From positions 1 through 64,000 of the IMG/VR virus record IMGVR_UViG_3300020438_000007: 64,000 bases of DNA. One strand, written 5' to 3'. Position 1 is the first letter of the stretch, and every line of letters starts with the position of its first letter. A program made the position numbers and the translations under genes. Shown here one piece after another: positions 115 to 39,217 of this stretch. The notes beneath the pieces were generated by a model that was given only the letters and a program-made list of their open reading frames with translations, was not told the origin of the DNA and searched no databases.

Positions 115-1203
115 TTAACCGATGGAAGGTGCAGTAAGAGCAACAGGAGTTGACTCAGCAGCAGCGAGATCCAAGGGGAAGTTGTGAGCGTTACGCTCGT
201 GCATGACTTCCATACCCAGACCAGCGCGGTTAAGCACGTCTGCCCATGTTGGAATCACTTTACCACTTGCGTCTACAACCGACTGGTTGAAGTTGAATCC
301 GTTAAGGTTGAATGCCATAGTTGACACACCCATTGCAGTAAACCAGATGCAAACCACTGGGAATGCTGCTAGGAAGAAGTGAAGTGAACGTGAGTTGTTG
401 AAAGATGCGTATTGGAAGATCAAACGACCGAAGTAGCCATGAGCTGCAACGATGTTATATGTTTCTTCTTCTTGTCCGAACTTGTAACCATAGTTCTGAG
501 ACTCTTGCTCAGTTGTTTCTCTGATTAGAGAAGATGTTACGAGTGAACCGTGCATTGCACTGAATAATGAACCACCGAAGACACCAGCCACTCCAAGCAT
601 ATGGAAGGGGTGCATTAGGATATTGTGCTCTGCCTGGAACACGAACATGTAGTTAAAAGTACCTGAGATACCAAGTGGCATTGCATCAGAGAAAGAACCT
701 TGACCGAAAGGATACACTAAGAATACAGCGAATGCTGCAGACACTGGTGCTGAATAAGCAACACAGATCCAAGGACGCATACCTAAACGGTATGAAAGTT
801 CCCACTGACGACCACAGTATGCTGTGATGCCGATTAGGAAATGGAAGACTACAAGTTGGAATGGACCACCGTTATACAACCACTCATCGAGTGATGCTGC
901 TTCCCAGATTGGGTAGAAGTGAAGTCCGATAGCATTTGAACTAGGAACAACTGCACCAGAGATGATGTTGTTACCGTACATTAAAGAACCTGCTACTGGT
1001 TCTCTGATTCCGTCGATGTCTACTGGAGGTGCTGCGATGAAAGCAATGATGAAACATGTTGCTGCTGCCAACAAGCATGGGATCATCAGTACGCCGAACC
1101 AGCCGACATAGATGCGGTTGTCAACTGAGGTTACCCAGCTGCAGAATTCGTCCCATCCTGAGAGGAGACCACCGCGTTGTTTTGAACGTGAAAGAGTTGT
1201 CAT
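115..1203 (-). CDS. psbA: Photosystem II D1 protein
   Basis: Unmistakable D1 sequence ([14 protein letters not shown]...[13 protein letters not shown]). Start placed at MTTLSR (ATG 1203). No intron. Confidence 0.99.
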
Positions 1204-1322
1204 TTGAAAAAGGGTTAGGTAATAGTGCAGGGATACACCGATAAAATATTCCTTCGCCACCCTCAGGCGGAGGTATAAGAGACGTAATTTAATGACCCAT
1301 AGGTCTCGGTTAGCGGGTCAGA
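1204..1322 (-). ncRNA. Structured psbA 5' leader, probably the PhotoRC-II motif
   Basis: TGACCC(1320-1315)/GGGTCA(1298-1293) stem. Loop GAGAC(1307-1303) pairs with GTCTC(1283-1279), giving a pseudoknot. A second hairpin lies at 1251-1273. The position matches the described cyanophage PhotoRC motifs, but the family name is from recall. Confidence 0.65.
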
Positions 1323-1347
1323 AAGATGTTGGAATCAACACCCCTAC

Positions 1348-3399: not shown

Positions 3400-3506
3400 T
3401 AAAAGATGCCTGGAATAATTTGTCCTGTTAAAGCATATGCGCCTACTGCTGCAACGAAACCGAGCATAGCTGCCCAACCGTTAAATCTTTCTGCTTCTGG
3501 TGTCAT
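3399..3506 (-). CDS. hli: High-light-inducible protein (35 aa), not in the ORF track
   Basis: MTPEAERFNGWAAMLGFVAAVGAYALTGQIIPGIF. Confidence 0.95.
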   Translation of the reverse strand: MTPEAERFNGWAAMLGFVAAVGAYALTGQIIPGIF

Positions 3507-3555
3507 GATAGTGTACCTTTTATGTGTTTAAAATGTGTATGATTGGAATCTTCCT

Positions 3556-3997: not shown

Positions 3998-4533
3998 GAT
4001 TGATTTGGTCCTCTAGGGGGTTCTGTAAGGTAAATGTTACCTGATATCGTAGTTCCCTCTCCGCCACTCGTTACAAAGTGTTCTATCCATGAGGGGAAGA
4101 TAATAATATTACCAGCGGGAACGTTGGGAATGAAATCCATAGAGATTGCAGTACCATACATTGCCCACTGATTCATTATTAATTTACGAGAAGGATTCAT
4201 AAAAACAGTTCTGGAATGATCCACAGACTCCACAATAATGAAACTCCATTGAGCCCCTGAGTGGATGTGTGGATCTTGCCAGTCGTGTTTCTCATATTTG
4301 TTACGCCACACCTGACCAATCACAAAATCATCTGGTATGAACTGTTGTACGCACTCTGCAATGAGTCCTTTAACATATTCATATGATTCATCAGTGAACT
4401 TATCATGTCCCAGTGTTGTAGGACAATCACTAAGGAATGTAGGTTGAAAATCCTCAGATACCAAATTGACCTCATCTAGATCGATGGATTCAACAAAAAA
4501 TGGTGCCGAGAATATTGCGTGTGGATTTCTCAT
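3994..4533 (-). CDS. 2OG-Fe(II) oxygenase-like protein
   Basis: W..Y...HxH (PHIH) and FPSWIEH motifs; ISGN near the C-terminus. Confidence 0.75.
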   Translation of the reverse strand: MRNPHAIFSAPFFVESIDLDEVNLVSEDFQPTFLSDCPTTLGHDKFTDESYEYVKGLIAECVQQFIPDDFVIGQVWRNKYEKHDWQDPHIHSGAQWSFIIVESVDHSRTVFMNPSRKLIMNQWAMYGTAISMDFIPNVPAGNIIIFPSWIEHFVTSGGEGTTISGNIYLTEPPRGPNQS

Positions 4534-4550
4534 GTTGTAATTATAACAGA

Positions 4551-4583
4551 AAAAAGACCCACTGCAATCACAGGGGTCTTTTT
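4551..4583. terminator. Rho-independent terminator overlapping the next promoter
   Basis: AAAAAGACCC...GGGTCTTTTT; TATAAT at 4545-4540 just beyond it. Confidence 0.75.
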
Positions 4584-4609
4584 GTTTTTATATACTAACG
4601 TATCTATGT

Positions 4610-4960
4610 TTAGAAAACGTACTTAGCACCGACTTTAACACCGTATCCATTGTCTGCACCATCAGCAGTTTGGAAAGTTACTTCACCATAACCAAGAACT
4701 GTCTCTGACAAATCAACAGATCCACCTGCCTTAGCAAGGAATTCTGTGTCGCCATCAGTACCGTCAGGTGAGTTTACGATAGGACCGCCTTGAACGAACC
4801 AGTTGGAACCTTCGTAACCAAGTGCGAACTCAGTTGTATTTCCAGTGTAGTCCCCACCAGTGAATGAAGAATTGGCTTCTACATTTACATAAGGACCTGC
4901 GAACGCGGCACCAGCGAAAAGGGGTGCAGCAGCTAAAGCTGCGATTACATTTTTGAACAT
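4610..4960 (-). CDS. Small outer-membrane beta-barrel-like protein
   Basis: Signal peptide (..AGAAFA|GP), amphipathic beta strands and a C-terminal KYVF typical of BAM substrates. Confidence 0.75.
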   Translation of the reverse strand: MFKNVIAALAAAPLFAGAAFAGPYVNVEANSSFTGGDYTGNTTEFALGYEGSNWFVQGGPIVNSPDGTDGDTEFLAKAGGSVDLSETVLGYGEVTFQTADGADNGYGVKVGAKYVF

Positions 4961-6560: not shown

Positions 6561-7418
6561 TTAGGTAACGATCCAACCATCACAATATAAATCCTTTAGA
6601 TTTTTATCTTTGTAATCTGGCCCGAACCATTGCTTAGGTGCAACAACTTTACCTCTACCATTTTGTAACCATGCACCCCACCATGATAAGGAGGAGTTGG
6701 CGATGATTGCACCAGAGCATAAACTCATGATGCAAATATCAACAAATGGTTCATAAGATCCATCAGGATATTTGTCTGTTGGTTCTGATATGAGGAACCT
6801 ATCATCAGCAAAGAACTCTTGTTCTTTTACCCACTCAGGAGAGTCCGAACATACAACCACAGGTTGATCCTCTGGGAACTCCTTGAGTGCCTTCTCATAG
6901 TATTCTACGGGTTGTGGAGGGTGTTGACCAGAACATTCGGTGTAAGACCATTTGAATCCTCTGGCATCGACTAGGTTGGGATCTCCTCTCCTAACATGCA
7001 GAAACAATGGAGCCTGATCTAATGAATCTACCATCTCCTTACAAGGTCCTAGAATAGAATCATGAAAAGTAAAATCTCTCCTGATATCTTGTTCTATATT
7101 TTTAAAATATTTTTCTGTCTGAAAGAATCCAAATAAACTTACATCATTAGGACACATCCTATGGAGTTCTTCATCAAACTCAAAATGTTTTTCGATTACA
7201 ACAGGAGCATGACCTCTATCAAGAACTGCAAGATTACTTCTTCCCACACTCTCTAATGTAAATGCTCTGTGTAAACTATAATTATCTACTCTCTTGGATT
7301 CAAAAGGTGGAATACCAAACTCGTATCCACGCATCGCAGAGATACCCCTAACGGCAGCATATTGAAACATCTGATTACCTAGTCTGCCTAGGTTTCCCAT
7401 TTGATTAAAGGCCAGCAT
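6561..7418 (-). CDS. Glycosyltransferase family 11 (alpha-1,2-fucosyltransferase-like)
   Basis: GRLGNQMFQY, HVRRGD and IIANSSLSWWGAWL motifs. Confidence 0.92.
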   Translation of the reverse strand: MLAFNQMGNLGRLGNQMFQYAAVRGISAMRGYEFGIPPFESKRVDNYSLHRAFTLESVGRSNLAVLDRGHAPVVIEKHFEFDEELHRMCPNDVSLFGFFQTEKYFKNIEQDIRRDFTFHDSILGPCKEMVDSLDQAPLFLHVRRGDPNLVDARGFKWSYTECSGQHPPQPVEYYEKALKEFPEDQPVVVCSDSPEWVKEQEFFADDRFLISEPTDKYPDGSYEPFVDICIMSLCSGAIIANSSLSWWGAWLQNGRGKVVAPKQWFGPDYKDKNLKDLYCDGWIVT

Positions 7419-8241
7419 TTAGTTCTTCCCCCCTACGTTTGATGTAGTCTAGTTTTGAATAATATTGTGTAACGGACTCTTTATCTTGAGTCCTAATCCA
7501 GTTCCACAATCTATCGTTGTCTTGAAACTTAGGATTGTGGTAGTGTGAATTGAATGTTCTACCGTGTTCAAAGTGGTAGATGTCATCAATAACTCTGCCA
7601 ACTTTAAATCCAAAAAGATTTAGTCTGTAATAAAACTCACAATCTTCTGCACCCCATGAGATAAATTCTTCATTCCATAGTCCAGCAGATACTTCTGCGG
7701 TTTTAGTTATCATCTGACCCCATCCAATAGACGACGGAATCCTAACTTTAGCATCTTTCAGAACTTCAAAGTCAGCATCAGATCCATCATGTGATGATAG
7801 AAAATTATCCAATAGTTGATCAGAATAAGTTACTGCCCACTGATAGATACCACATCCGAAAGGATAGACAGCATCAGATCCTTCCCTCGTGATGGCACGG
7901 TGAGCAAGTTCATGTGAGTTCTTCGGAACAACAACGTCCACATCATGATTATAAATGATGGGAGTGTCAGCGAGAACACATAGGTCATTAAGGATTCTAG
8001 TTTTATGAAAGAACGTCTCGGTACTCTGTTCAAAAACATGTTTGAGTTGTGATGTGTCCTTTACATAATTTTTAATACGAGGTAAAGCACTCTCACTAAA
8101 GTGTGATTGAGTGTCAACTTCTTTAACAATAATCTTTGCTTCGGGGAAACATTTTAAGATATAGGTAACAGAAGTAATAACATTACGAAGTCTATCTTCT
8201 GTCTCAATCCTACATGGAAGTAGGTAGGTGAGGTCTTTCAT
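7405..8241 (-). CDS. GT-A fold glycosyltransferase (GT2/GT7 C-terminal type)
   Basis: DVD motif, WGAED motif and YHFEH. Confidence 0.8.
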   Translation of the reverse strand: MKDLTYLLPCRIETEDRLRNVITSVTYILKCFPEAKIIVKEVDTQSHFSESALPRIKNYVKDTSQLKHVFEQSTETFFHKTRILNDLCVLADTPIIYNHDVDVVVPKNSHELAHRAITREGSDAVYPFGCGIYQWAVTYSDQLLDNFLSSHDGSDADFEVLKDAKVRIPSSIGWGQMITKTAEVSAGLWNEEFISWGAEDCEFYYRLNLFGFKVGRVIDDIYHFEHGRTFNSHYHNPKFQDNDRLWNWIRTQDKESVTQYYSKLDYIKRRGEELNAGL

Positions 8242-28175: not shown

Positions 28176-30731
28176 ATGGCTCGTCAGGGAATATTTACTG
28201 GATTCACACCGAATGATGGTCTGGGAGATTCCCTTGCCTTAGGCGCATCCAAAGTAAATCAAAACTTTACAGAGATTTATACTACCTTCGGTGACGGTAC
28301 AAATCTCAGTGTTAATGCAGGGAGTGCTGGTACTTGGACGAAGGCAGGGAACACAGGAATTTACACAAGTAAGAACGTTGGCATCGGTACGACTGATCCT
28401 ACTGCTTCTTTATTTGTATCAGGTAATGTTCAATTAACAGGTATTACAACTGGAACATTCGTTGGAGATGGTTCTGGTCTAACAGGTGTGACCGCAGTTG
28501 GTCAAGGTGTTGTTATAAAAGACAGTGGAACACTAGTTGGTGTTGCACAAAGTCTTAACTTAGATAAGAATTTAACTGTCACACAGGTGTTTGGTGGAAA
28601 TGTAACAGTTTCTGCTGCTGATACTGTAGGATTTGCGTTCACTTCTGGATTCTCTACTACATCTGCATACGCAAACGTTTCTGGAGTATCAACCACTGCA
28701 ACAACTGCTGGGTTTGCTGACACTGCAACACTGGCATACACTGCAAACTTCGCCACGATTGCTGGTATCGTAACTTACTCACAGGCATCTGGTATTGCAA
28801 CCAACTCTGGTGTTGCTGAGTATGCAAAGGTAGCTGGTATCGCATCATACGTTGCCAATGCAGGGTTCTCAACCATGGCGGGGTATGCACATACCGCAGG
28901 CATCGCCACAGTCGCACAGAATTTAACAGGAACTCCTTCTATTGTTATCGACAATATCAATTCTGCGATTGGTATTGTGACCATGCCTGGTCAAGGTAGT
29001 AAGATGCGTTTCGACTTTGACGCAACAGGTGATCTACCCCAATCAACCTCTTGGAGAGGTATGTTTGCATGGGCAAACAACACCAAGACTGCATATGTTT
29101 CCAGTGGAACCACAATGGGTGGTTACAATGGTTGGAGACAGATACTTCATCAGGATGACGAAGGCAACTACTTTACAGTAGGTGTCATAACTGCATCCAA
29201 GTTTGCTGGTGATGGATCTGGACTTACAAACTTACCATCAACAGATAGTATTTGGAGAACAAACTCCACTGGTATTCACACTCTCAGCAACGTTGGTCTT
29301 GGAACTACCAACACAGAAGGATATAAACTTAACGTACTAGGTAACTTAAAGTTACAAGGCAGACTGGACGGAACTGCAACAGATAATATACTACCTCACT
29401 TGTGGTCAACCTACGCATCTCTACCATCATCATCCACTTATCATGGTGCATTTGCTCACGTTCATGAGACAGGAAAGGCATACTATGCACACGCTGGTTG
29501 GAATGAACTGGTCAATAAAAATCAAGATCAATCGGTTGGAACTGGAACTGAAAACTATAGAGTTGGTGTTCTAACTGCAATATCATTTACTGGAGATGGA
29601 TCTGGTTTAAGTAATATCAATGTATCATACGCAGCTTCAGCTGGTATTGCAACTCTATCACAAGGACTAGAAGGTAAACCAGACATCTTAGTTGCTAACA
29701 TCAACTGTACTGGTATTACTACTAGTGCAACATTCGTTGGAGATGGTTCTGGACTGACAGGTATCACTGCATCTGGTAGTGGTATTATCATCAGAGAAGG
29801 CGGCACACTCGTAGGAACTATTGGAACTGTAAACTTCGGAACTGGTTTCGATGTTTCCCCTGCATCTGCTGGTGTAGTAACAGTCACCACATCAGGTGGC
29901 GGCGGTGGTGGTATCTCTGGTATTGTATATCAGGAGGAAGGATCTACTGTTGGTACTGCACAAACCGTTAACTTCATTGGTGTTGCATGTACAGTAACAC
30001 ATAGTGGTGGAGTTGCAACTGTCAACTTGGCAGGAGCAGTACCATTCACAGGACCTGCTGCAAGCATAACTGCACTTGACATTACACAGTATGAAGCAGC
30101 ATATGGATGGGGTGATCACTCTGGTGCTGGATATCTGACAGGTATAGGTGGTCAAGGATTAGGTAATCTAAACAACGTTTCTAATGTATCTCCAAGTACA
30201 AGTGATGTATTAACATGGAGTGGATCACAGTGGGCACCAGCCGCACCTACAGGTGGTAGTGGTGGAATAATAATTAAAGAAGAAGGAAGTCAAGTTGCAG
30301 CAGGAATCACCTCACTTAATTTTGTTGGATCTACTGTAAGTGCAACTGCTTCTGGAACAGATGGAACTATCACAATCACTTCTGGTGGTGGTGGAGGTGG
30401 CAGTATTTCCACAACTGGAGTTGGAACATACACTGCATCTGCTGGTGTGGAACAACAGGTAGATTCATGGTCTAAGTTAAGTTACTCTGGTGCAGAGTAC
30501 ACATTTATGATTGGTCTAGGAACATTCAGACAATCACAGAAAGTTCTTGTCATGCACGATGGAACTACGGCGTTCTCACAAGAATATGGCATCATGTTCT
30601 CTCCAGAACAACAGGTATCAATCGCTGCAACTGTAAGTAGTAACAACGTTCTAGTTAAAGTTACTCCTGAGTCAGGGATATCTGGTTTATCAACATACAG
30701 ATTCGTTAAAACTTTTATTGAGAACCTATGA
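28176..30731 (+). CDS. Tail fibre-like virion protein
   Basis: gp9/gp10-like N-terminus (NDGLGDSL..GASKVNQNFTEIY); VGIGTT and FxGDGSGLT repeats; Gly/Thr-rich. Confidence 0.85.
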   Translation: MARQGIFTGFTPNDGLGDSLALGASKVNQNFTEIYTTFGDGTNLSVNAGSAGTWTKAGNTGIYTSKNVGIGTTDPTASLFVSGNVQLTGITTGTFVGDGSGLTGVTAVGQGVVIKDSGTLVGVAQSLNLDKNLTVTQVFGGNVTVSAADTVGFAFTSGFSTTSAYANVSGVSTTATTAGFADTATLAYTANFATIAGIVTYSQASGIATNSGVAEYAKVAGIASYVANAGFSTMAGYAHTAGIATVAQNLTGTPSIVIDNINSAIGIVTMPGQGSKMRFDFDATGDLPQSTSWRGMFAWANNTKTAYVSSGTTMGGYNGWRQILHQDDEGNYFTVGVITASKFAGDGSGLTNLPSTDSIWRTNSTGIHTLSNVGLGTTNTEGYKLNVLGNLKLQGRLDGTATDNILPHLWSTYASLPSSSTYHGAFAHVHETGKAYYAHAGWNELVNKNQDQSVGTGTENYRVGVLTAISFTGDGSGLSNINVSYAASAGIATLSQGLEGKPDILVANINCTGITTSATFVGDGSGLTGITASGSGIIIREGGTLVGTIGTVNFGTGFDVSPASAGVVTVTTSGGGGGGISGIVYQEEGSTVGTAQTVNFIGVACTVTHSGGVATVNLAGAVPFTGPAASITALDITQYEAAYGWGDHSGAGYLTGIGGQGLGNLNNVSNVSPSTSDVLTWSGSQWAPAAPTGGSGGIIIKEEGSQVAAGITSLNFVGSTVSATASGTDGTITITSGGGGGGSISTTGVGTYTASAGVEQQVDSWSKLSYSGAEYTFMIGLGTFRQSQKVLVMHDGTTAFSQEYGIMFSPEQQVSIAATVSSNNVLVKVTPESGISGLSTYRFVKTFIENL

Positions 30732-32944
30732 TTCATACTAGTACGAACACTCTCGATAGGTCAGGCCTGGCTACCAAGCCAGTTGGAACTGATGACAAGA
30801 AGGCATACTCTATTAAATGTTATACCAAAAATGATTGGGTATTCATTCATGAGGAACTAGAGAAAGATGGATCATTGGAAGATAACATTCCTGATCCAAC
30901 AATAGTATGTCCTGACAAGAAGGAACATAGTGATACCAGAGCAACTTACATGTTGACTGATGCGGAAGCAGAGGATTTAAGAAAACATGAGAAGGTACAG
31001 TGGGTCTGTATTGACTATGATGTATATCCAGGCAACTATTCTCCAGATCCAAAAGATATTATCGCTGGTGTACAAAAATTTGGTAGGTTCAATAAGACAG
31101 TATCTAACTACAGAGCATGGAATACTTCGCCAACAGGCACTAGGCCACCAACAACCCAGGCTGGTATTGGTGCAACAGATAAGAACAGAACTGGATATCA
31201 AATACTAAGACATACACAAAAAGAAAACCCTTGGGATGCAACATCCACTGGGCTGACTGGATCTGATCATCTAATAATAGAGACTGAACCAAAGCAATTA
31301 GGTGATGGCACTGGTGTAGATGCAATCGTAGCTGATGATGGTTTCTGGATTGCACACCCAGAATTTGTAACAACTGACGATGATCCTGTAGGTTGGTCAA
31401 CAGGAAACGCATTAACATGGAGTGGTATATCTACAACTCCAGGCACATGTGGTGTTCTAGATGTACTTCTTGATGGTCCATATTATATTGACCCAGCATG
31501 GTTCAATGCAGATCCAGGCAATAGATTGATTCAACGTTGGGACGGAACAACAGTACCAGTAGAGTCTGTTGCAAGAGCATGGTGGTCTGATTCAAGTCAG
31601 AGATCAGTAGGATTCTCTACCATTGGCACTACAAATGGTTTCAGTGCTTCATATAGTAGACAAAGTTGCAACGGAAGTAACACACAGAAACCAACCAACG
31701 GTTCTGATCACGGAACTCAGTGTTCTGGTCAAGTATATGGTAAGAATTATGGATCGGCATATAACTGTAACAAATGGGTATTGAATGGTATCGGTGGTTC
31801 TAATGCTGGAATCAATGGTAGTCAATTTGATATACAGAAACTCTTCCACTTATATAAACCAAACTATGATAGACATTCTGCTATCACTGGTAAAGAAAAT
31901 GATACTAAAAACCCCACACTATCAAGTAATAGTTGGGGTTACAGATCTAGCTCTATACATACCACAGGTTACTATTGGTATAGACCATCAGCAACAGATG
32001 GATCAGAGACTGGCGTATCCTATAGTAGTGGTGCTGAACCAGAATTCATTGATTTACTAGGCGCATATGGTGATAGTAATAGGTGTAAAGGAGAGATGGT
32101 AGAAAGTTCTGTAACTGCTGCTGGTGATGAGTTAGCTGAGGCGGGAGTTATCTTCGTCTGTGCTGCTGGTAATAGTAATCAGACTCAATGTAGTCCTGGC
32201 GATCTTGACTTTGATAATTATTGGGCTACCAGTTCTCAAGGTAACAGTTCTTCCTTAGAATCCGCAACTCATAGTGAATTTGGATTGACATGTTATAACA
32301 CTATCAATAGAAGAGGATGGCCACAGGCACTAGGTAAAACCACATCTGGATTATCTACTGCTGGAACTGAATATGCTGCTATTAATATTGGTGCATTAGA
32401 TGATCAAATTACAAGTAGTGGACTAGGTGGTAACACCACAGACTACAAAGAAAAGAAAGTGAACTATAGTGATATGGGAACAGGTATTGATTGTTATGGT
32501 GCTGCTGATGACACACTCACAGCAGATGGAAGAGCATCATCTCTTACATATGTTCACCCAGAAACATATACTGGTCTCACACTTACCCCATATGATATTG
32601 ATTTTGGTGGTACTAGTTCTGGATGTCCTACATGTGCTGGTTGGTTAACTACCAAACTACAATATAATAGAGATTGGACTTGGAGAGAAATAAAAGATTG
32701 GTTGAAAAACCAGTGTGGTAGTCAATCTCCTGACAGATTTTACTATGGTGATAACATTACATCTTTCACTGCAACAACAGCTGCATGGGAAGATATGTAT
32801 TCCGTTCAGATGTATGGTCAAGGACCTGTTGTCATCTGGGATGCTCCTACTGGTTCACCTACCGAACCCAAAAAACCTGAGATAAAAATCACCAACTCCC
32901 CTAACCTTAAAATCAGTGGTGGAGTTGAGATAAAGTTCTCTTAA
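30728..32944 (+). CDS. Subtilisin-like S8 serine peptidase
   Basis: D (VADDG), H (DHGTQCSG), oxyanion N (AAGN) and S (GGTSSGCP); N-terminal propeptide-like region. Confidence 0.85.
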   Translation: MIHTSTNTLDRSGLATKPVGTDDKKAYSIKCYTKNDWVFIHEELEKDGSLEDNIPDPTIVCPDKKEHSDTRATYMLTDAEAEDLRKHEKVQWVCIDYDVYPGNYSPDPKDIIAGVQKFGRFNKTVSNYRAWNTSPTGTRPPTTQAGIGATDKNRTGYQILRHTQKENPWDATSTGLTGSDHLIIETEPKQLGDGTGVDAIVADDGFWIAHPEFVTTDDDPVGWSTGNALTWSGISTTPGTCGVLDVLLDGPYYIDPAWFNADPGNRLIQRWDGTTVPVESVARAWWSDSSQRSVGFSTIGTTNGFSASYSRQSCNGSNTQKPTNGSDHGTQCSGQVYGKNYGSAYNCNKWVLNGIGGSNAGINGSQFDIQKLFHLYKPNYDRHSAITGKENDTKNPTLSSNSWGYRSSSIHTTGYYWYRPSATDGSETGVSYSSGAEPEFIDLLGAYGDSNRCKGEMVESSVTAAGDELAEAGVIFVCAAGNSNQTQCSPGDLDFDNYWATSSQGNSSSLESATHSEFGLTCYNTINRRGWPQALGKTTSGLSTAGTEYAAINIGALDDQITSSGLGGNTTDYKEKKVNYSDMGTGIDCYGAADDTLTADGRASSLTYVHPETYTGLTLTPYDIDFGGTSSGCPTCAGWLTTKLQYNRDWTWREIKDWLKNQCGSQSPDRFYYGDNITSFTATTAAWEDMYSVQMYGQGPVVIWDAPTGSPTEPKKPEIKITNSPNLKISGGVEIKFS

Positions 32945-34471: not shown

Positions 34472-34479
34472 TATAAATA
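34472..34479 (+). promoter_or_regulatory. T4-consensus late promoter TATAAATA
   Basis: Exact match upstream of 34506. Confidence 0.75.
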
Positions 34480-34505
34480 CAGGCAGACTAAGAGTGGGAA
34501 ATCAC

Positions 34506-35018
34506 ATGAAAAGATTTTTACCTTTAATTATGCTTTTGATGGCGGCTCCCATGGCAGCGAGGGCCGATTTAACACACCGTTTGACTACGAGTACACAACT
34601 TACCGTAGACAGCGCAGCAACTCAGGCCACAAGGATTGGGTCAACCTATAGTGTACAAGGTACAAACATTACCGCAGGCACAATGGGTGGACTAACAAAG
34701 TCTTCTGGGGATAGTATTTCAACAGCGGCTGCTAGTCAAACTCAAGGTGCATACACAGTTACAACTGCTGGCTCTGCCTTCAGCTTAAGTGAATCATTCA
34801 CTTTAGGCGATGCAGTAAATCCAATCGGAACTGGTGTTGACGTATCTTCGGGTGTTGTCGTTGACATGCCTGCCTATGGTAGTGTAATCACTCAAAGTGG
34901 CGGCGTGGCAGGGAGTCTTGCTGGTACAATTACTTCAGCGGGCGTTATGACACTAACAGCTGGCGGGGCAGGCACATCTGCTACTGGGCAATTTGTTTCA
35001 GAAATCTCGATAGATTGA
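34506..35018 (+). CDS. Exported Thr/Ser/Gly-rich protein
   Basis: Signal peptide MKRFLPLIMLLMAAPMAARA|D. Confidence 0.8.
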   Translation: MKRFLPLIMLLMAAPMAARADLTHRLTTSTQLTVDSAATQATRIGSTYSVQGTNITAGTMGGLTKSSGDSISTAAASQTQGAYTVTTAGSAFSLSESFTLGDAVNPIGTGVDVSSGVVVDMPAYGSVITQSGGVAGSLAGTITSAGVMTLTAGGAGTSATGQFVSEISID

Positions 35019-35027
35019 ACATGAGTA

Positions 35028-35522
35028 ATGAAGAAACTTCTAACGACATTTGTGACAGTTGCGGTTGCCATTGTCCTTGCGAATGTGAGGACTGCGAAGG
35101 CTGTGCCTGTGGTGCCTAATTTCCAACAGGGCAGCATGACATCTCGGACCGAAACGACTTCGACAGTGACCGAGACTATAAATTCAATTGATATGAGGAC
35201 AGGATGGGAGTATTCGGTAACGGGCACAGGGGTTTCCAACAATGGAGAATCACTCAACCCACCAGTGAGTACATCAACAGTGAATGTAACACCAAGCAGT
35301 TCAGCGGGTTCAACAGGGGGAGCATTAGTAACAGGACAAGTAACAAGTTCCTTCGACTCCTTAGACTTCTCCAACCCAAACAGTTTTACAATAACAAATC
35401 CAGGCGGAAGCTTTCAATTCACACAGAGCTACCAAGGGCCTGGCATGACCAACCAGACAATAATACAGAGAGTGACCGCCATAGAAAGCGTGACCGACAC
35501 AACTTCAACGTTTACACAATAG
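35028..35522 (+). CDS. Exported Thr/Ser-rich protein
   Basis: Signal peptide ending TAKA|VPVVPNF. Confidence 0.8.
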   Translation: MKKLLTTFVTVAVAIVLANVRTAKAVPVVPNFQQGSMTSRTETTSTVTETINSIDMRTGWEYSVTGTGVSNNGESLNPPVSTSTVNVTPSSSAGSTGGALVTGQVTSSFDSLDFSNPNSFTITNPGGSFQFTQSYQGPGMTNQTIIQRVTAIESVTDTTSTFTQ

Positions 35523-36358
35523 GTACATTAGTACTATCAATTATCTCTCCAACGGCGGCATTAGCAGAGAATGTTGGAGGGGTATCAGCGACAGCAAATC
35601 CAATAGCGAACAGCTCGGGCAGTGTTACAAATCAAGCTATACAGGTGCTACAAGGACCGTATATAACTAATACTTACGGTGGTGGCGTGCAATGTCAAGG
35701 TGCTACTGTCAACTTCACACCCTACTTACAATTTGCGGACAGTAGAAAAGATCCTTGGAGAGATTTCTACATGGAGCCACAATATAATACTACTGACTTT
35801 ACTGGTCGTACTTCACAACAAACTGTCACAGTAAAAAACTATCCTTGGGAGTCATGGTATGACACAAGGACTAAAGCAGATGGAACTAGATGGTTCCCCG
35901 ATGGTGAAGACATGGATATAGTTGTAGATGTAGATGGTCCCAATGGCATACCAGACAATCCAGGCCAAGTACTCTGGGAGAAACCTGTTCGTACTAATAT
36001 GGTAGCAAACCAGTCATTCAATCTTGGTTTATCTGCTACTCTTTCTATACCACTCAACAGAGGTTTGCAAAAGAAATGTAGTGAAGCAGCACAGGCACAA
36101 AATGATATGCAAAAACAATTACTTGCCAATAAGCGCCTCGACTTTGAACTAGCAAGACTCAAGAATTGTGGTGAATTGAAAAAAACTGGCATATTTTTCC
36201 ACCCCAAATCACCATACCATTCTGTATGTGCTGACGTGGTAGTTACAAATCCTGGCGGTCAACTACTTCCGCACACACATGACATGCCTAAACCAAATTG
36301 GAAAGAAGAAAAACCAAATGGCAGTGCATCTGATCTAGAAACATTTCAAATACCCTAA
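35204..36358 (+). CDS. Exported or membrane protein; start codon uncertain
   Basis: Signal-like segment IGTLVLSIISPTAALA|E near 35520. The only in-frame ATG upstream of it is at 35204, inside the previous gene. Confidence 0.7.
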   Translation: MGVFGNGHRGFQQWRITQPTSEYINSECNTKQFSGFNRGSISNRTSNKFLRLLRLLQPKQFYNNKSRRKLSIHTELPRAWHDQPDNNTESDRHRKRDRHNFNVYTIGTLVLSIISPTAALAENVGGVSATANPIANSSGSVTNQAIQVLQGPYITNTYGGGVQCQGATVNFTPYLQFADSRKDPWRDFYMEPQYNTTDFTGRTSQQTVTVKNYPWESWYDTRTKADGTRWFPDGEDMDIVVDVDGPNGIPDNPGQVLWEKPVRTNMVANQSFNLGLSATLSIPLNRGLQKKCSEAAQAQNDMQKQLLANKRLDFELARLKNCGELKKTGIFFHPKSPYHSVCADVVVTNPGGQLLPHTHDMPKPNWKEEKPNGSASDLETFQIP

Positions 36359-36909
36359 TGTTTAGACCACCCTATTGGTCTCATGATAACATTAAGATTC
36401 CAGATAGTATAATAAACACATTAAAATTAAGATTGTCCAACGTAGAATTGATTGACAATCATAAAAGTTCTTACTGGATGAATCGAGAGTATGCAGAGAA
36501 GAGACCAGATGAATTTCTAAATGAAAGATACGATATTATCGTAGAAGATATCGTAAAGAATGTAGGCGTCTTCAATGAATCAACATACGCATATACATAC
36601 TGGACACAACTATATGATCATGGTAATAACATAGGACCACATAATCATGTAGATAAAAAATGTCCGGCTGATATATCTTGGGTTCACTTCCTAGATGTGC
36701 CAGATCAAAAGTGTTTTCGTTTTACTGACACTCAAGGAAATACATTAGTTCCTGACAATCAAAGTAATGGTGATATAATTTGTTTTCCCTCGTGGTTATG
36801 GCATGAAACCATACCAACTGATGAACAAAGATTGATTGTCTCTGGTAATATAAGCTTAAACTTTGATGATGTTGATATGTCTAAGTATAAATCAATACCT
36901 ACTTACTAG
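36358..36909 (+). CDS. 2OG-Fe(II) oxygenase-like protein
   Basis: PHNH, SWVHFL, FPSWLWHE and RLIVSGN motifs. Confidence 0.8.
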   Translation: MFRPPYWSHDNIKIPDSIINTLKLRLSNVELIDNHKSSYWMNREYAEKRPDEFLNERYDIIVEDIVKNVGVFNESTYAYTYWTQLYDHGNNIGPHNHVDKKCPADISWVHFLDVPDQKCFRFTDTQGNTLVPDNQSNGDIICFPSWLWHETIPTDEQRLIVSGNISLNFDDVDMSKYKSIPTY

Positions 36910-37774
36910 ACTTCTTTAAGTCCTTTAACATATTCTTTTTGTTACCGAACCTTAGTTCTGGTAATCCTTTTTCTTTTCTATACTTATTAGTTTTTATCTC
37001 GTTTGCGGAAAGTTTCCTCTCTTTCTTACCTAATGCTTTCTGAACTCTCTTGATAACCTGTTTGACTAAGGGTTTGATAACTCTTAGTAAGAGAGGCGTT
37101 GCAGCTGCAGCAGCAGTAGCCACTATAGCAATTGATGCAGTAGTAGTTGCCTGATTGGCAGAAGGCAAAAATTTCTCTACAACTGTAGTAGATTCATACA
37201 ATGTCTCACAAATTTTTTGCTTAGGATTATTTGGATCAGTTATTAACTGGTGTCCAGTCACCCTCTCGTCTCCCGACGAAGTTACATCACCCACTCTAAG
37301 TTCATTAGGACCAGGGCACTCAGGATCTTTATATCCTCCTGTAGTATCTGGTCGTTCAGTATTGGAATCTGGTGGTGAAGGTGGATCACCTGTATCCACA
37401 CCACCTGTAACTTCTTCTGGTTCTCCGTATACTGTAGTCCACGTCAGTTCATTAGCTTGATAATCAGGTGGTTCGTAGTATGGCATACCGCCATCACATA
37501 ATACCACGTTACCTTTAGGGTCATCATTGACCAAATTTTTATTTCTAGATGGATCTCTCTTAGCGTTCTCTTTGTTTACCTTGACACACCCTGGCATGTC
37601 TACAATAGGCACTCCTATGTTCACAGTCACAGGTGGCGTGAAAGGAACTGACTGTGGAGTATTTCTCATCCAAGGTCTATTGATATTTGCAATATCAAGT
37701 GTACCTGTGTCTATGTTCTGGATGAGTCTTAATCCAGTACCATTTACATAGATCTGTGGAATATCATTTGGCAT
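36899..37774 (-). CDS. Hypothetical membrane protein
   Basis: Pro/Cys-containing domain, Ala-rich TM segment and a basic tail. Confidence 0.8.
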   Translation of the reverse strand: MPNDIPQIYVNGTGLRLIQNIDTGTLDIANINRPWMRNTPQSVPFTPPVTVNIGVPIVDMPGCVKVNKENAKRDPSRNKNLVNDDPKGNVVLCDGGMPYYEPPDYQANELTWTTVYGEPEEVTGGVDTGDPPSPPDSNTERPDTTGGYKDPECPGPNELRVGDVTSSGDERVTGHQLITDPNNPKQKICETLYESTTVVEKFLPSANQATTTASIAIVATAAAAATPLLLRVIKPLVKQVIKRVQKALGKKERKLSANEIKTNKYRKEKGLPELRFGNKKNMLKDLKKSSK

Positions 37775-38006
37775 TAGGGATCACCATCTTCAATCCCCTA
37801 ACTTGGCCAGATTGACTAGGCCATGCTTCTTTTAAAGCAGAACGAACTTCTTCTCTAACTACTTCTCTAATTTGTTGTAGTTGCACTTCCTGTCTTTTTT
37901 CAGGACCACCCAGTTGTTGATCAATAAGTTGACCTCCACCCATCACTGCACCAGTTCCTACAACTGCTACTGCGGTTCCATAGGTAGCTATTTTTTGTAT
38001 ATCCAT
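37764..38006 (-). CDS. Hypothetical membrane-anchored protein
   Basis: N-terminal hydrophobic segment followed by a charged helix. Confidence 0.7.
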   Translation of the reverse strand: MDIQKIATYGTAVAVVGTGAVMGGGQLIDQQLGGPEKRQEVQLQQIREVVREEVRSALKEAWPSQSGQVRGLKMVIPNAK

Positions 38007-38251
38007 CAGTGATCGGGGGTATCATCATCTTTAGGTAAACCTAAGTCACCTAATTTATCTAGGAAAGCTGCACGTTGTTCCCATGTTTGTCCACTAGTAG
38101 AACCTTTACATGGGTTAATACACTGCTCAAAGTCATGAACGTTACAAACTAACCCTGCAAGATCATGAGGACATCCTTCTTTACCTGTTGACCAATACAG
38201 TTGGTCATCTATCCACTTAGCTTCACATTTTGGACATGTTTTAATATTCAT
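38006..38251 (-). CDS. Cys-containing hypothetical protein
   Basis: CPKC...DLAGLVCN...CINPC. Confidence 0.75.
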   Translation of the reverse strand: MNIKTCPKCEAKWIDDQLYWSTGKEGCPHDLAGLVCNVHDFEQCINPCKGSTSGQTWEQRAAFLDKLGDLGLPKDDDTPDH

Positions 38252-38454
38252 AATGAGTCACTATCACAATTAATGTACTGTCTTTCGAGAATTAGTTTAT
38301 AGAAATTATTTTTCAAATCTCTCAAACGTTCTTGTTCATCTGGATCAATATTGTTTCCTGGCCATTTTTCTAAATGGAAGCACAATGATTGGTAGATTTG
38401 TTTTACGGAACTATATTCTAACTCGAAAGCAAACCAAAGTTCTTCGTCCATCAA
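38248..38454 (-). CDS. Hypothetical protein
   Basis: 68 aa ORF; CTAAATA late motif at 38490-38484 upstream. Confidence 0.7.
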   Translation of the reverse strand: MMDEELWFAFELEYSSVKQIYQSLCFHLEKWPGNNIDPDEQERLRDLKNNFYKLILERQYINCDSDSL

Positions 38455-38498
38455 GGTCCTCCCCTTGCGTGACTATAAAGAACTATTTAGTGTTGATA

Positions 38499-38750
38499 CT
38501 AGAAGGGACTCGTAGGCACGTCAGGTAACGTTGACGGTGCAGTTGCATCCATGCCTGGAGTAGTAAGTCCTCCTAATGCTCCGCCACCAAGAGCACCACC
38601 AAGAGATCCAGTGACTGCCTCCATTACTTGACCTTTGACGTTATCTACGATTGCGTCCTTATTTACATATAGATACCCAGCAGCACCCACGACGGTGAGG
38701 GATACAATACCACTAGCAAGAGCGATTCCATTTACGATTTTTTGAAACAT
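38499..38750 (-). CDS. Hypothetical membrane protein
   Basis: N-terminal TM segment and a Gly/Pro tail. Confidence 0.75.
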   Translation of the reverse strand: MFQKIVNGIALASGIVSLTVVGAAGYLYVNKDAIVDNVKGQVMEAVTGSLGGALGGGALGGLTTPGMDATAPSTLPDVPTSPF

Positions 38751-38752
38751 AA

Positions 38753-39217
38753 TTACATCTCATATTTTTTAGGATCAGTTTCGGTAGTTATTTTTAAAGG
38801 TGCTTGTTCAATACGAATAGTTTGTGCTGGTGCAGTTTGTGATGCTGCAGCAATCAGTTTTTCCATATCTGCCTTTGTTATTCCACTGCCACTACCAGAA
38901 GCAGTACCGTTACCATTCATCTTCATAGTACCGTCACCTTTCTTAGATGCGGTCTGAATGCCAAAGCTCGCCAAAACGCCTGTAAAGACCGAAGCTATAA
39001 AAGTTGGATCAATTTTCTGTTGAGGAATGCCTGGAATGGCAACATAATTTAATGTCAATATCCCGCCGGACCAAACCAACACACCAAGGCGAACAAATGT
39101 ACTAATGATAGCACCTCGATCATCCTCATCGGGTAGGATTTTGTCTTTTAATTTTCCGAGAGGGCCTTTTGGTTTCTCTTCTTCTTTCTTAGGCGGAGTT
39201 TTAATAGATTCTGACAT
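38753..39217 (-). CDS. Hypothetical two-TM membrane protein
   Basis: VRLGVLVWSGGILTLNY and IDPTFIASVFTGVLASFG segments. Confidence 0.8.
   Translation of the reverse strand: MSESIKTPPKKEEEKPKGPLGKLKDKILPDEDDRGAIISTFVRLGVLVWSGGILTLNYVAIPGIPQQKIDPTFIASVFTGVLASFGIQTASKKGDGTMKMNGNGTASGSGSGITKADMEKLIAAASQTAPAQTIRIEQAPLKITTETDPKKYEM

Follow-up and report, generated by a model that had tools for sequence, protein, structure and literature searches.

The 64-kb window analyzed here (64,000 nucleotides of a T4-like cyanomyovirus with a genome of 230 kb and 84% nucleotide identity to S-SSM7) carries a group of genes shared by phages of marine Synechococcus and Prochlorococcus, both myo- and podoviruses. 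With a probability of roughly 45%, we read this locus as a conserved, late, non-virion envelope cassette of marine picocyanobacterial phages that acts as a lipoprotein-free lysis or outer-membrane-disruption module, and it may represent the lysis machinery, so far undiscovered, with which these phages break open the host envelope. The internal start of ORF3 within ORF2 is a new point: statistical evidence from the reading frames indicates that T4-like cyanophages, and also some podoviruses, initiate ORF3 at an ATG lying within ORF2 in the -1 frame, which would place a basic extension of about 55–120 residues ahead of its signal peptide.

Gene content and conservation

The members of the cassette are ORF1, ORF2, ORF3, T4-GC234, a DUF6450 protein, and a small one-TM protein (Table 1).

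Table 1 Features of the locus, with positions in the window.
Feature	Position	Strand	Length, family	Description
T4-type late-promoter-like box TATAAATA	34472..34479	+		Exact match; upstream of ORF1
ORF1	34506..35018	+	170 aa; T4-GC237, phrog_564	Predicted Sec-exported; Thr/Ser/Gly/Ala-rich, Cys-free
ORF2	35028..35522	+	164 aa; T4-GC236, phrog_650, Pfam DUF6322	Predicted Sec-exported
Candidate ORF3 RBS and start	35195..35206	+		GAGGA, 4-nt spacer, ATG; formed by ORF2 codons R-T-G-W
ORF3	35204..36358	+	384 aa; T4-GC235, phrog_848
ORF3 basic N-extension	35204-35509	+		Encoded inside ORF2, -1 frame
ORF3 hydrophobic segment and ALA↓ENV site	35510-35566	+		Residues 103-121
ORF3 predicted exported body	35567-36355	+
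ORF3 strand FNLGLSATLSIPL	36017-36055	+
2OG-Fe(II) oxygenase gene	36358..36909	+	phrog_81, 3.5e-25	Between ORF3 and the convergent genes
T4-GC234	36899..37774	-	291 aa; phrog_570	One C-terminal TM, residues 215-233
T4-GC231	37764..38006	-	80 aa; phrog_22018	Weak Gly-rich hydrophobic N-terminus, below both thresholds
Small non-membrane protein	38006-38251			Six Cys
Small non-membrane protein	38248-38454			Acidic
Small one-TM protein	38499..38750	-	83 aa; phrog_568, annotated 'plasmid stability'	One N-terminal TM, Gly-zipper-like tail
DUF6450 protein	38753..39217	-	154 aa; T4-GC218, phrog_2714	Hydrophobic segments 36-54 and 73-87; charged ends

The cassette recurs in T4-like myoviruses, T7-like podoviruses, and the 38-kb phage MED4-184, and was found in Syn9, S-RIM12, P-SSM2, P-SSM4, metagenomic relatives, MED4-184, NATL1A-7, and P-SSP7. 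Because the same genes travel together across these three phage groups, the trio appears functionally tied to the membrane proteins that face it, in agreement with the original prediction, which treated the two sets as one unit and proposed gene-order conservation as a check. ORF3 homologues were counted in 419–455 phage records; the records carrying the cassette came from cyanophages only, among the part of the 399 protein clusters covered by taxonomy, and the Atlas clusters were 100% viral, with no host homologue among them. T4-GC234-237 were reported in about 15 of 16 cyanomyoviruses (PMC3037559).

The surroundings of the cassette vary. In the window, the trio lies 3′ of baseplate and gp9-like genes, with tail-fibre genes also among its neighbours, and in Syn9 and P-SSM4 the cassette sits among replication genes, beside hsp20 and the DNA polymerase. 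In the T7-like phages NATL1A-7 and P-SSP7, four cassette genes are flanked by the tail-fibre genes on one side and the small terminase on the other, at the site of gene 17.5 (holin) on the T7 map.

ORF1 and ORF2 carry classical Sec signal peptides (an MKR/MKK n-region followed by a hydrophobic core, KD15 2.15 and 2.59, respectively) with signal peptidase sites ARA↓D and AKA↓V; both are rich in Thr/Ser/Gly/Ala and free of Cys. The end of the ORF1 signal peptide, ARA↓DLTHR, is kept in all loci, and the C-terminal extension of the protein is Gly/Ala/Thr-rich. ORF2 matched DUF6322 at 119 bits (Pfam cut-off 30.6), and its most conserved parts in the alignment are the mature N-terminus VPVVPNFQQGS and the C-terminus SVTDTTSTFTQ. 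ORF1 is probably a distant DUF6322 paralogue; distant genes at its position have precomputed DUF6322 matches, as do 2 of 17 ORF1 family members, its Atlas feature score to DUF6322 clusters is 0.98, and its hhalign comparison with ORF2 gave an E-value of 0.0012 (probability 19%).

The body of ORF3 contains four invariant cysteines (Cys164, 292, 322, and 342), a PHTH motif, and a 43-residue helix, followed by a variable Ser/Pro/Gln-rich C-terminal tail (family lengths 382–482 aa). Its AxA site is conserved; in some of its relatives the leader is long and basic, and in others there is a short signal peptide of the classical type. The trio is considered exported. Distant homologues of ORF3 have short signal peptides of textbook form, and the four Cys of ORF3 are invariant; ORF3 itself is predicted to be an exported disulfide-type protein, and two or three cassette products to be Sec-exported. 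These features bear out what had been described from the letters of the window: two clear Sec signal peptides and a third signal-like segment, a Thr/Ser/Gly-rich composition, and a strand, a helix, and Cys residues in the third protein.

Three cassette products, T4-GC234, the DUF6450 protein, and the small one-TM protein, are clearly predicted to be membrane proteins. T4-GC234 combines an acidic N-domain with four Cys and a basic 59-residue C-tail with 21 Lys/Arg; its homologues adjoin ORF3 homologues in all lineages examined, with short versions in T7-like phages. The 83-aa protein, whose homologues accompany the cassette in Syn9 (gp162), P-SSM4, and MED4-184, could be holin- or antiholin-like, judging from its size and topology alone, and the DUF6450 protein (114 bits, Pfam cut-off 25) could be holin-like by topology only. 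In metagenomic relatives and in MED4-184, NATL1A-7, and P-SSP7, the DUF6450 gene immediately precedes the DUF6322 genes. Four membrane-anchored proteins converging on the trio had been proposed; those at 36899, 38499, and 38753 are clear, but for the one at 37764 the hydrophobic signal is weak and membrane anchoring is doubtful.

The 2OG-Fe(II) oxygenase, whose Pfam match is slightly below the cut-off, has no counterpart at the equivalent site of Syn9, P-SSM2, P-SSM4, or the metagenomic loci; its gene is evidently an insertion and falls outside the cassette in other phages.

ORF3 starts inside ORF2

No ATG, GTG, or TTG was found near the signal-like segment of ORF3. Only one start is conserved, an ATG at 35204 that lies 106 codons inside ORF2, in the -1 frame, and adds a basic N-extension of about 105 residues. 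The ORF2 codons at this start are near-invariant (T58 ACA in 64/65, G59 GGA in 63/65); Thr and Gly codons elsewhere in ORF2 are freely variable. The -1 frame is open over 103–147 codons of ORF2 in all complete loci examined, with a probability of 0.0003–0.02 under within-gene synonymous permutation, and of at most 0.0003 at every long-overlap locus under the codon usage of the window's structural genes (7–10 stops expected). The overlap is short in Syn9/P-SSM4-type phages and P-SSP7, and openness alone is not significant there (P 0.04–0.34). Synonymous diversity is 1.22 bits in the overlap versus 1.56 before the ATG (p = 0.002), and the net charge of the extension is always positive.

The length of the overlap depends on the clade (about 37, 55, 105, or 121 codons). 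In distant relatives, ORF3 has a short signal peptide, and its start overlaps the ORF2 stop by 4 nt, as an ATGA-type junction would. It could be argued from these relatives, and from the constant -1 relationship of the two genes, that a programmed -1 frameshift fuses ORF2 to ORF3 or that ORF3 starts at the ORF2 stop junction, where in a few loci a GTG does overlap the TGA stop, ahead of a complete signal peptide. However, the overlap contains no conserved X_XXY_YYZ heptamer, the junction codon varies (GTA in 21, ATA in 24, and GTG in 4 unique sequences) and is therefore not a conserved start, and the open stretch begins at an in-frame stop only 2–4 codons before the codon-conserved ATG in 44 of 62 unique sequences, which makes both options very improbable.

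The arrangement recalls overprinted genes such as Rz1 within Rz, with a conserved out-of-frame overlap and a newer frame that is compositionally biased and probably disordered, but the ORF3 overlap covers only an N-terminal leader of 55–121 residues on a pre-existing exported protein, its frame is -1, and its length is clade-dependent. The basic extension would remain cytoplasmic, where it might delay or anchor export; alternatively, it might stay in the membrane after the signal peptidase has cut at the conserved AxA site.

Promoter box, timing, and virion proteomes

The TATAAATA box lies 27 nt 5′ of the ORF1 ATG at 34506 and is identical in S-SSM7. In the window's clade, GTATAAATA is found at about -33 of ORF1, and other clades have CTAAATAG or CCTATATA at the same position. 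Neither the octamer (2 copies per 64 kb versus 4.5 expected) nor TATAAAT (19 occurrences versus 17.7 expected) is enriched in the window. The box, behind which the original prediction placed a late-expressed trio, owes its weight to its position and its conservation at about -33 in this clade, and we infer that it would act as a promoter. PMC7885011, citing Lindell 2007, reports P-SSP7 genes 29–51 as belonging to the late class, a range that includes PSSP7_042-045 if locus-tag numbers equal the gene numbers of that paper. Together, the box and this gene range lend indirect support to late expression.

T4-GC234-237 are not among the Table S8 proteins detected in S-SM1, S-PM2, and Syn9 virions (PMC3037559). 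Such absence is negative evidence.

A possible role in lysis

Among the functions originally suggested for an envelope assembly, lysis is the best supported because of the gene position and the published lack of spanins, while a surface fibre has no evidence beyond predicted beta-hairpins. Twenty of 91 published spanin-less phages infect Prochlorococcus or Synechococcus, S-SSM7, Syn9, P-SSM2, P-SSM4, and P-SSP7 being on the list. The 230-kb genome gave no match to Phage_lysozyme, M23, SLT, or Amidase_2, and no homology was found between the cassette proteins and any holin, spanin, or lysin.

As infection ends, the cassette proteins would act together on the envelope of the host and provide the lysis system with its membrane and outer-membrane components. 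The DUF6450 protein and the small TM protein might play a holin- or antiholin-like role in the inner membrane, and T4-GC234, ORF3, and the DUF6322 proteins might jointly do the work of spanins, bridging the periplasm and breaching the outer membrane without any lipoprotein.

The cassette resembles two-component spanins (lambda Rz/Rz1; T4 PseT.3/PseT.2) in its apparently late genes, its pairing of a membrane-anchored with a Sec-exported periplasmic partner, its conserved periplasmic Cys, a gene that begins inside another in a different frame, and its place beside holin-like small membrane proteins and in the lysis region of T7-like phages. Unlike spanins, its exported proteins have no lipoprotein signal and are large and beta-rich (139–263 aa mature) instead of short Pro-rich or coiled-coil, the anchored partner T4-GC234 has a C-terminal and not an N-terminal TMD, and there are three or four components, with no sequence or fold similarity. 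Uncleaved ORF3 would have the topology of T4 holin T (N-in, one TM, large disulfide periplasmic domain), and small TM proteins accompany it as in the holin T/antiholin RI system, but its AxA site is conserved, its distant relatives have ordinary short signal peptides, and no sequence similarity is seen. T4-GC234 shares with the unimolecular spanin T1 gp11 a C-terminal TMD and a beta-rich periplasmic part, but not the N-terminal lipoprotein signal, and has a long basic cytoplasmic tail.

Some observations speak against lysis. The ~210-residue N-domain of T4-GC234 would have to lie outside the membrane without a signal peptide, which is unusual; the RNA evidence comes from contigs only; no lipobox was found in the exported proteins, and ORF1 and ORF2 are Cys-free; and the baseplate and tail-fibre neighbours in the window are compatible with an assembly role.

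Alternative functions

Superinfection exclusion or envelope remodelling, in which receptors are masked or the DNA entry of other phages is blocked as by T4 Imm/Sp, would suit an envelope-located module undetected in virions and confined to the phages of one host group (within the taxonomy covered), and an arms race could explain the variable ORF3 tail. As a rule, exclusion genes are expressed early and are accessory and patchy in distribution. The cassette, however, is found in nearly all cyanomyoviruses and is frequent among T7-like cyanophages, with a late-type promoter box and, in P-SSP7, a position in the range reported as late, making this function rather unlikely.

The cassette proteins might instead assist virion assembly, or be low-copy accessory components of the virion or the tail fibre. 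This would fit the late promoter box and the position of the trio after baseplate and gp9-like genes in the window and after tail-fibre genes in T7-like phages; the proteins might, for example, be periplasm-independent beta-rich fibre proteins whose 'signal peptides' are assembly or membrane-tethering segments. The AF2 model of ORF2 (pLDDT 68) has beta strands of 24–25 residues in long hairpins, weakly similar to the phi29 tail knob and ENA fibres. The families are nevertheless unlisted in three virion proteomes, the cleavable AxA signal peptides and four invariant Cys indicate an oxidising extracytoplasmic compartment, and the cassette lies among replication genes in Syn9 and P-SSM4; we consider this role unlikely.

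Sec signals of cyanobacteria also lead to the thylakoid lumen, and the exported proteins might manipulate photosynthetic membranes there. The restriction of the cassette to cyanophages (in the covered clusters), the neighbouring 2OG oxygenase and weakly NblD-like small protein, and the top ORF3 Foldseek rows, which are cytochrome f but not significant (E 0.07, TM 0.2), would agree with this. Yet the cassette genes are apparently late, going by the reported P-SSP7 classes, and not co-expressed with middle-class auxiliary genes; they have viral Atlas clusters only, lack any haem or cofactor motif, and occupy the lysis slot of T7-like phages, so that a luminal function seems quite improbable.

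A curli-like (type VIII) secretion system, in which ORF2 would plug a CsgG-like channel made of ORF3 in the manner of CsgF, is hardly credible: ORF2 is a small Sec-exported protein with a P-N-F-x-x-G motif in the strongly conserved VPNFQQG near its mature N-terminus, but the suggested resemblance to CsgF found no CsgF/CsgG match in Pfam, the PDB profile search, or the fold searches, Foldseek included, ORF3 has no lipobox, and there is no lipoprotein channel partner.

Fold searches matched no known fold for the structure models (pLDDT 76 and 68, pTM <0.4), in which long beta-hairpins are predicted with moderate confidence. The hairpins of ORF2 offer a lead to the stems of beta-pore-forming toxins (anthrax PA, lysenin, iota Ib), although Z is at most 3.2, the Foldseek probability is below 0.5, and the Thr/Ser-rich strands have no clear hydrophobic face.

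Overall, what the original prediction had observed was partly confirmed, and its interpretation is partly supported. It did not mention the 2OG oxygenase gene (36358-36909) or the small proteins at 38006-38251 and 38248-38454; the weak NblD-like small protein is encoded among the neighbouring genes.

A conserved cassette of exported and membrane proteins

Synechococcus phages S-SSM6a and S-SSM7 (Kyanoviridae) match the region at 84% nucleotide identity over 82% of its length, and S-SSM7 has the same gene order as the window, which is the first 64 kb of an IMG/VR virus record of 230,739 bp (99% complete). The S-SSM7 genes are labeled T4-GC237 (ORF1), 235 (ORF3), 684 (2OG oxygenase), 234, 231, 392, 876, 1367 ("plasmid stability") and 218.

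Signal peptides were judged manually and by hydropathy, Sec export by signal peptidase I being called on an N-terminus that combines a basic n-region with a hydrophobic h-region and a small-x-small cleavage site. As originally predicted, ORF1 and ORF2 carry textbook Sec signal peptides and are Thr/Ser-rich; both are also acidic and Cys-free. In ORF3, the predicted signal-like segment is hydrophobic and ALA↓ENV comes after it; the body that follows is rich in beta structure, and the protein also has a long helix and contains Cys. The Sec elements are found throughout the trio; the ORF3 cleavage site is kept in every clade, its distant relatives have classical signal peptides, and cleavage presumably takes place at AxA. 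Four membrane-anchored proteins had been proposed to face the trio. GC234, the 83-aa protein and the DUF6450 protein are of this kind, whereas the hydrophobicity of the 80-aa protein is weak. GC234 would be anchored through its single transmembrane segment (TM).

Features in the window and in comparison loci (L-numbers).
Feature	Sequence	Position	Strand	Remarks
Phage_OMP (PF24653) match	window	4613-4960	-	E 1.5e-42; distant from the cassette
738-aa protein	window	30728-32944	+	two genes upstream of ORF1; syntenic with S-SSM7 SSSM7_232
TATAAATA box	window	34472-34479		inside the 57-nt gap preceding ORF1
ORF1 (T4-GC237)	window	34506-35018	+	
ORF2 (T4-GC236)	window	35028-35522	+	
TATAAATT	window	35177-35184	+	inside ORF2
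ORF3 (T4-GC235)	window	35204-36358	+	proposed ATG at 35204
ORF3 C-terminal tail	window	36300-36355	+	short form
GC234	window	36899-37774	-	one TM (residues 215-233); tail with 21 Lys/Arg
80-aa protein	window	37764-38006	-	
81-aa protein	window	38006-38251	-	six Cys; phrog_484, T4-GC392
83-aa protein	window	38499-38750	-	one N-terminal TM
DUF6450 protein	window	38753-39217	-	two hydrophobic segments
ORF3/GC234 3'-end overlap	L002	5644-5723		
ORF3/GC234 3'-end overlap	L003	3761-3990		
ORF3/GC234 3'-end overlap	P-SSM2 (L084)	6996-7210		
ORF3/GC234 3'-end overlap	metagenomic relative (L086)	3452-3531		
ORF2	S-SSM7 (L001)	6595-7080		RefSeq: cut to the 29-aa fragment SSSM7_228
ORF2	NATL1A-7 (L093)	4381-4752		without any annotation
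ORF3	P-SSM2 (L084)	6996-8021		annotated start falls after the signal peptide
234-aa gene	metagenomic relative (L086)	640-1344	-	adjoins the cassette

A 2OG-Fe(II) oxygenase gene, which overlaps GC234 by 11 nt, separates ORF3 from GC234 in the window. The ORF3 and convergent GC234 3' ends overlap by 80-230 nt in most phages, so that the two mRNAs would be mutually antisense. Upstream of the trio, the counterpart of the 738-aa protein in S-SSM7 is annotated with a subtilase (PF00082) domain and sits among baseplate genes. On the facing strand, the 81-aa protein gave a sub-threshold match (E 7.4e-6, 25 bits vs a cut-off of 80) to NblD, a small protein that cyanobacteria use in breaking down phycobilisomes, and may be a phage NblD copy or have just a zinc-ribbon in common with it.

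Gene order, which had been put forward as a check on the trio and its neighbors, is conserved, and the same genes travel together across phage types. Syn9 encodes gp167, 166 and 165, has gp164 in convergent orientation and gp162 close by, and P-SSM2 and S-RIM12 share this layout. In P-SSM4, GC235 is followed by GC234 in one operon. Metagenomic relatives (40-46% identity) have DUF6450, two DUF6322 genes and an ORF3 homolog, then a convergent GC234 homolog. The full cassette is also found in the non-T4-like 38-kb phage MED4-184, and the T7-like podoviruses NATL1A-7 and P-SSP7 encode a short GC234-like protein, DUF6450, ORF2 and ORF3, with an ORF3 homolog in at least 14 further T7-like cyanophages. 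Its genes are known from isolates in the hundreds and from metagenomic sequences in the thousands.

A probable start of ORF3 inside ORF2

Around the signal-like segment of ORF3, neither the window nor S-SSM7 has an ATG, GTG or TTG. Relative to ORF2, ORF3 is read in the -1 frame at 80 IMG/VR loci as well as in S-SSM7, S-RIM12 and P-SSM2. Wherever the sequence of the locus is complete, this frame stays free of stops over the 103-147 codons that precede the ORF2 stop. In this stretch, the codons for Gly and Trp (GGA TGG) in the ORF2 motif RTGWEY always create an ATG, and in 44 of 62 unique sequences an in-frame stop stands 2-4 codons ahead of it. In the window the ATG is at 35204, with GAGGA 4 nt upstream. 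Syn9 and P-SSM4 use a different Trp-derived ATG, 55 codons upstream.

Overprinting was called on an alternative frame open beyond synonymous-shuffle expectation, a conserved start and lowered synonymous variation. Synonymous permutation of ORF2 gave probabilities of 0.0003-0.02 for the open frame; when codons followed the usage of the window's structural genes, the expected number of stops was 7-10 and the probability for long-overlap loci was at most 0.0003. The ORF2 codons forming the start hardly change (of 65 sequences, 64 have ACA and 63 have GGA), while the remaining Thr and Gly codons vary freely, and ORF2 codons whose synonymous alternative makes a -1 stop are fixed (e.g., TTC before GAC, AAC before AAT). 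At conserved four- and six-fold sites, synonymous diversity in the overlap was 1.22 bits, compared to 1.56 before the ATG (p=0.002) and 1.40 in ORF1 (p=0.034). These figures make the statistical case for a functional overlap; all three signs were found, with weak evidence for the short-overlap clades. The -1 overlap also occurs in the T7-like phages, at 121 codons in NATL1A-7 (P 0.036) and 37 codons in P-SSP7 (P 0.24), the one weakly significant and the other not significant on its own.

Two other routes to ORF3 were rejected. A programmed -1 frameshift would call for a slippery heptamer (X_XXY_YYZ) of the upstream frame to be conserved inside the overlap; it is unlikely because no such heptamer is conserved there among 65 unique ORF2 sequences; the lone one sits upstream of the overlap, in 28 of 63 sequences. 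A start at the ORF2 stop junction is likewise unlikely, as the codon at this junction varies among GTA, ATA and GTG.

The overlap encodes an extension whose median length is 106 residues; Lys/Arg (22) outnumber Asp/Glu (9) in it, and its net charge is always positive. In distant ORF3 relatives, start and stop overlap by 4 nt, which fits an ATGA-type junction, and the signal peptide is short and classical; this is likely the ancestral state. The -1 overlap would be a clean natural example of a leader peptide made by overprinting. The conserved out-of-frame GC235 start (55-121 codons) also matters for annotation, since RefSeq drops or truncates ORF2 or ORF3 here.

Protein families and structure searches

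ORF2 belongs to Pfam DUF6322 (PF19847; 119.2 bits vs a cut-off of 30.6, E 1.2e-34), and the DUF6450 assignment (PF20048) scored 114.1 bits vs a cut-off of 25. ORF1 of the window had no profile match to DUF6322; two of the 17 members of its family match it (best E 1.5e-4), hhalign gave an E of 0.0012 at 19% probability, distant genes at the ORF1 position have precomputed DUF6322 matches, and the Atlas feature score of ORF1 was 0.98. From these comparisons, ORF1 is probably a distant DUF6322 paralog.

ORF3 matched no Pfam family. Word search gave at least 7941 protein matches to it, and exhaustive search 399 matching clusters at 50% identity. The exported body has four invariant Cys and a conserved PHxH motif, and its N-terminal 35 residues are highly conserved, yet disordered in the model. 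The length of ORF3 (382-482 aa) varies with a Ser/Pro/Gln-rich C-terminal tail past PHxH (homologs at loci L029, L050, L057 and L066).

The PHROG families of the cassette carry no functional annotation save phrog_568 ("plasmid stability"), and NCBIfam gave no match for the cassette. The ORF2 and ORF3 models, of moderate confidence, found nothing significant with Foldseek against the PDB or with VIA-align wide: the ORF3 rows matched the long helix only, and the best fold match of ORF2 (Z 3.2) was to pore-toxin stems. The ESM Atlas fold search returned the query protein's own viral family alone, the Atlas feature search limited to named clusters gave no usable match, and PDB sequence-profile searches found nothing. 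The cassette products may interact physically; complex prediction for the ORF3 body and mature ORF2 gave a score of 0.07 (mark 0.32), which counts neither for nor against binding.

Putative late-promoter box and transcription

The putative late-promoter box TATAAATA reported upstream of ORF1 is present. It is kept at about -33 in the window's clade, with CTAAATAG or CCTATATA there in other clades. As a statistical signal the octamer was rejected, since both it and TATAAAT occur in the window at or below chance frequency, without enrichment. A T4-type late promoter is gp55-dependent and has TATAAATA about 6-8 nt ahead of the transcript start; here the box is present and clade-conserved, though not enriched, and the RNA runs offer contigs only. 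Four runs from two studies gave identical contigs over the locus, contigs being no proof of transcription, strand or ends, and the two rRNA-depleted runs among them gave patchy contig coverage that takes in ORF1-ORF2, GC234 and DUF6450. We infer that the cassette is transcribed late in the window's phage.

A second box, TATAAATT, lies 20 nt ahead of the proposed ORF3 start, just upstream of GAGGA, and could be an internal late promoter. Against this, TATAAAT occurs in the window at chance frequency (19 times, with 17.7 expected), and only 5 of 65 relatives have the first T.

A putative role in lysis

A putative role in lysis or outer-membrane disruption is the best-supported function of the cassette, on the following grounds. 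In NATL1A-7 and P-SSP7, it is flanked by the tail-fibre genes and the small-terminase gene; at the corresponding place in T7, genes 17 and 18 flank the holin gene 17.5. The products do not appear to be virion structural proteins, as judged by published detection in purified virions: T4-GC234-237 are not among the detected virion proteins of S-SM1, S-PM2 and Syn9, and the genes are present in the same genomes' table (PMC3037559, Table S8). Where PMC7885011 cites Lindell 2007, P-SSP7 genes 29-51 are reported as late class; PSSP7_042-045 are among these provided that the locus tags are numbered like the genes in the paper. S-SSM7, Syn9, P-SSM2, P-SSM4, P-SSP7 and 15 other picocyanophages are listed as spanin-less by Kongari et al. 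(PMC6139136). Finally, a search of the window's phage genome for four common lysin families (Phage_lysozyme, M23, SLT and Amidase_2) gave no match. We know of no gene-level account of how cyanophages lyse Prochlorococcus or Synechococcus, and the literature yielded no functional study on DUF6322, Syn9 gp165, cyanophage OMP1 or the P-SSP7 holin.

More specifically, the cassette might encode a lipoprotein-free, Sec-exported multi-protein lysis machine in spanin-less picocyanophages, a proposal to which we give roughly three chances in ten. The machine would be built from DUF6322 proteins, tail-anchored GC234 and the disulfide protein GC235, with membrane proteins of the DUF6450 type as its gate; at lysis, it would break through periplasm and outer membrane. 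The basic cytoplasmic GC235 leader of ~100 residues, translated from within the DUF6322 gene, would set its timing or stoichiometry.

Holins are small, with at least one transmembrane domain (TMD), a charged C-terminus and demonstrated lethal hole formation; the DUF6450 and 83-aa proteins fit in size and topology only, and family searches gave no holin match. An i-spanin is held in the inner membrane by an N-terminal TMD, in type II topology, and its periplasmic domain is mainly coiled-coil. ORF3 has an N-in leader, a hydrophobic segment and a 43-residue helix; it also has the AxA cleavage site and a beta-rich domain. In GC234 the TMD is C-terminal. An o-spanin is an outer-membrane lipoprotein with a lipobox Cys at the end of its signal peptide, from which Cys-free ORF1 and ORF2 differ, as does exported ORF3, whose first Cys is mature residue 43. 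The proposed resemblance of ORF2 to CsgF, and with it the CsgF/CsgG (type VIII secretion) idea, was discarded, as no CsgF was found in Pfam (E up to 0.1), the PDB profile search (E up to 10) or the fold searches, and none of these gave a CsgG match either.

The spanin survey raises the question of an alternative route to outer-membrane disruption and suggests a C-terminally anchored type I protein together with an OMP as spanin replacement (PMC6139136). The cassette supplies concrete, testable candidates for this question. If the proposed machine is real, some of the ocean's most abundant viruses, whose lysis timing governs ocean carbon release, would possess an outer-membrane disruption system of a new class.

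Two further genes were seen at the metagenomic locus L086. A Phage_OMP-family (PF24653) gene lies close to the cassette there, and the adjoining 234-aa gene, with weak precomputed matches to the papain-like peptidase families Peptidase_C70 and C39_2, is a possible candidate for a cell-wall peptidase, perhaps the missing lysin.
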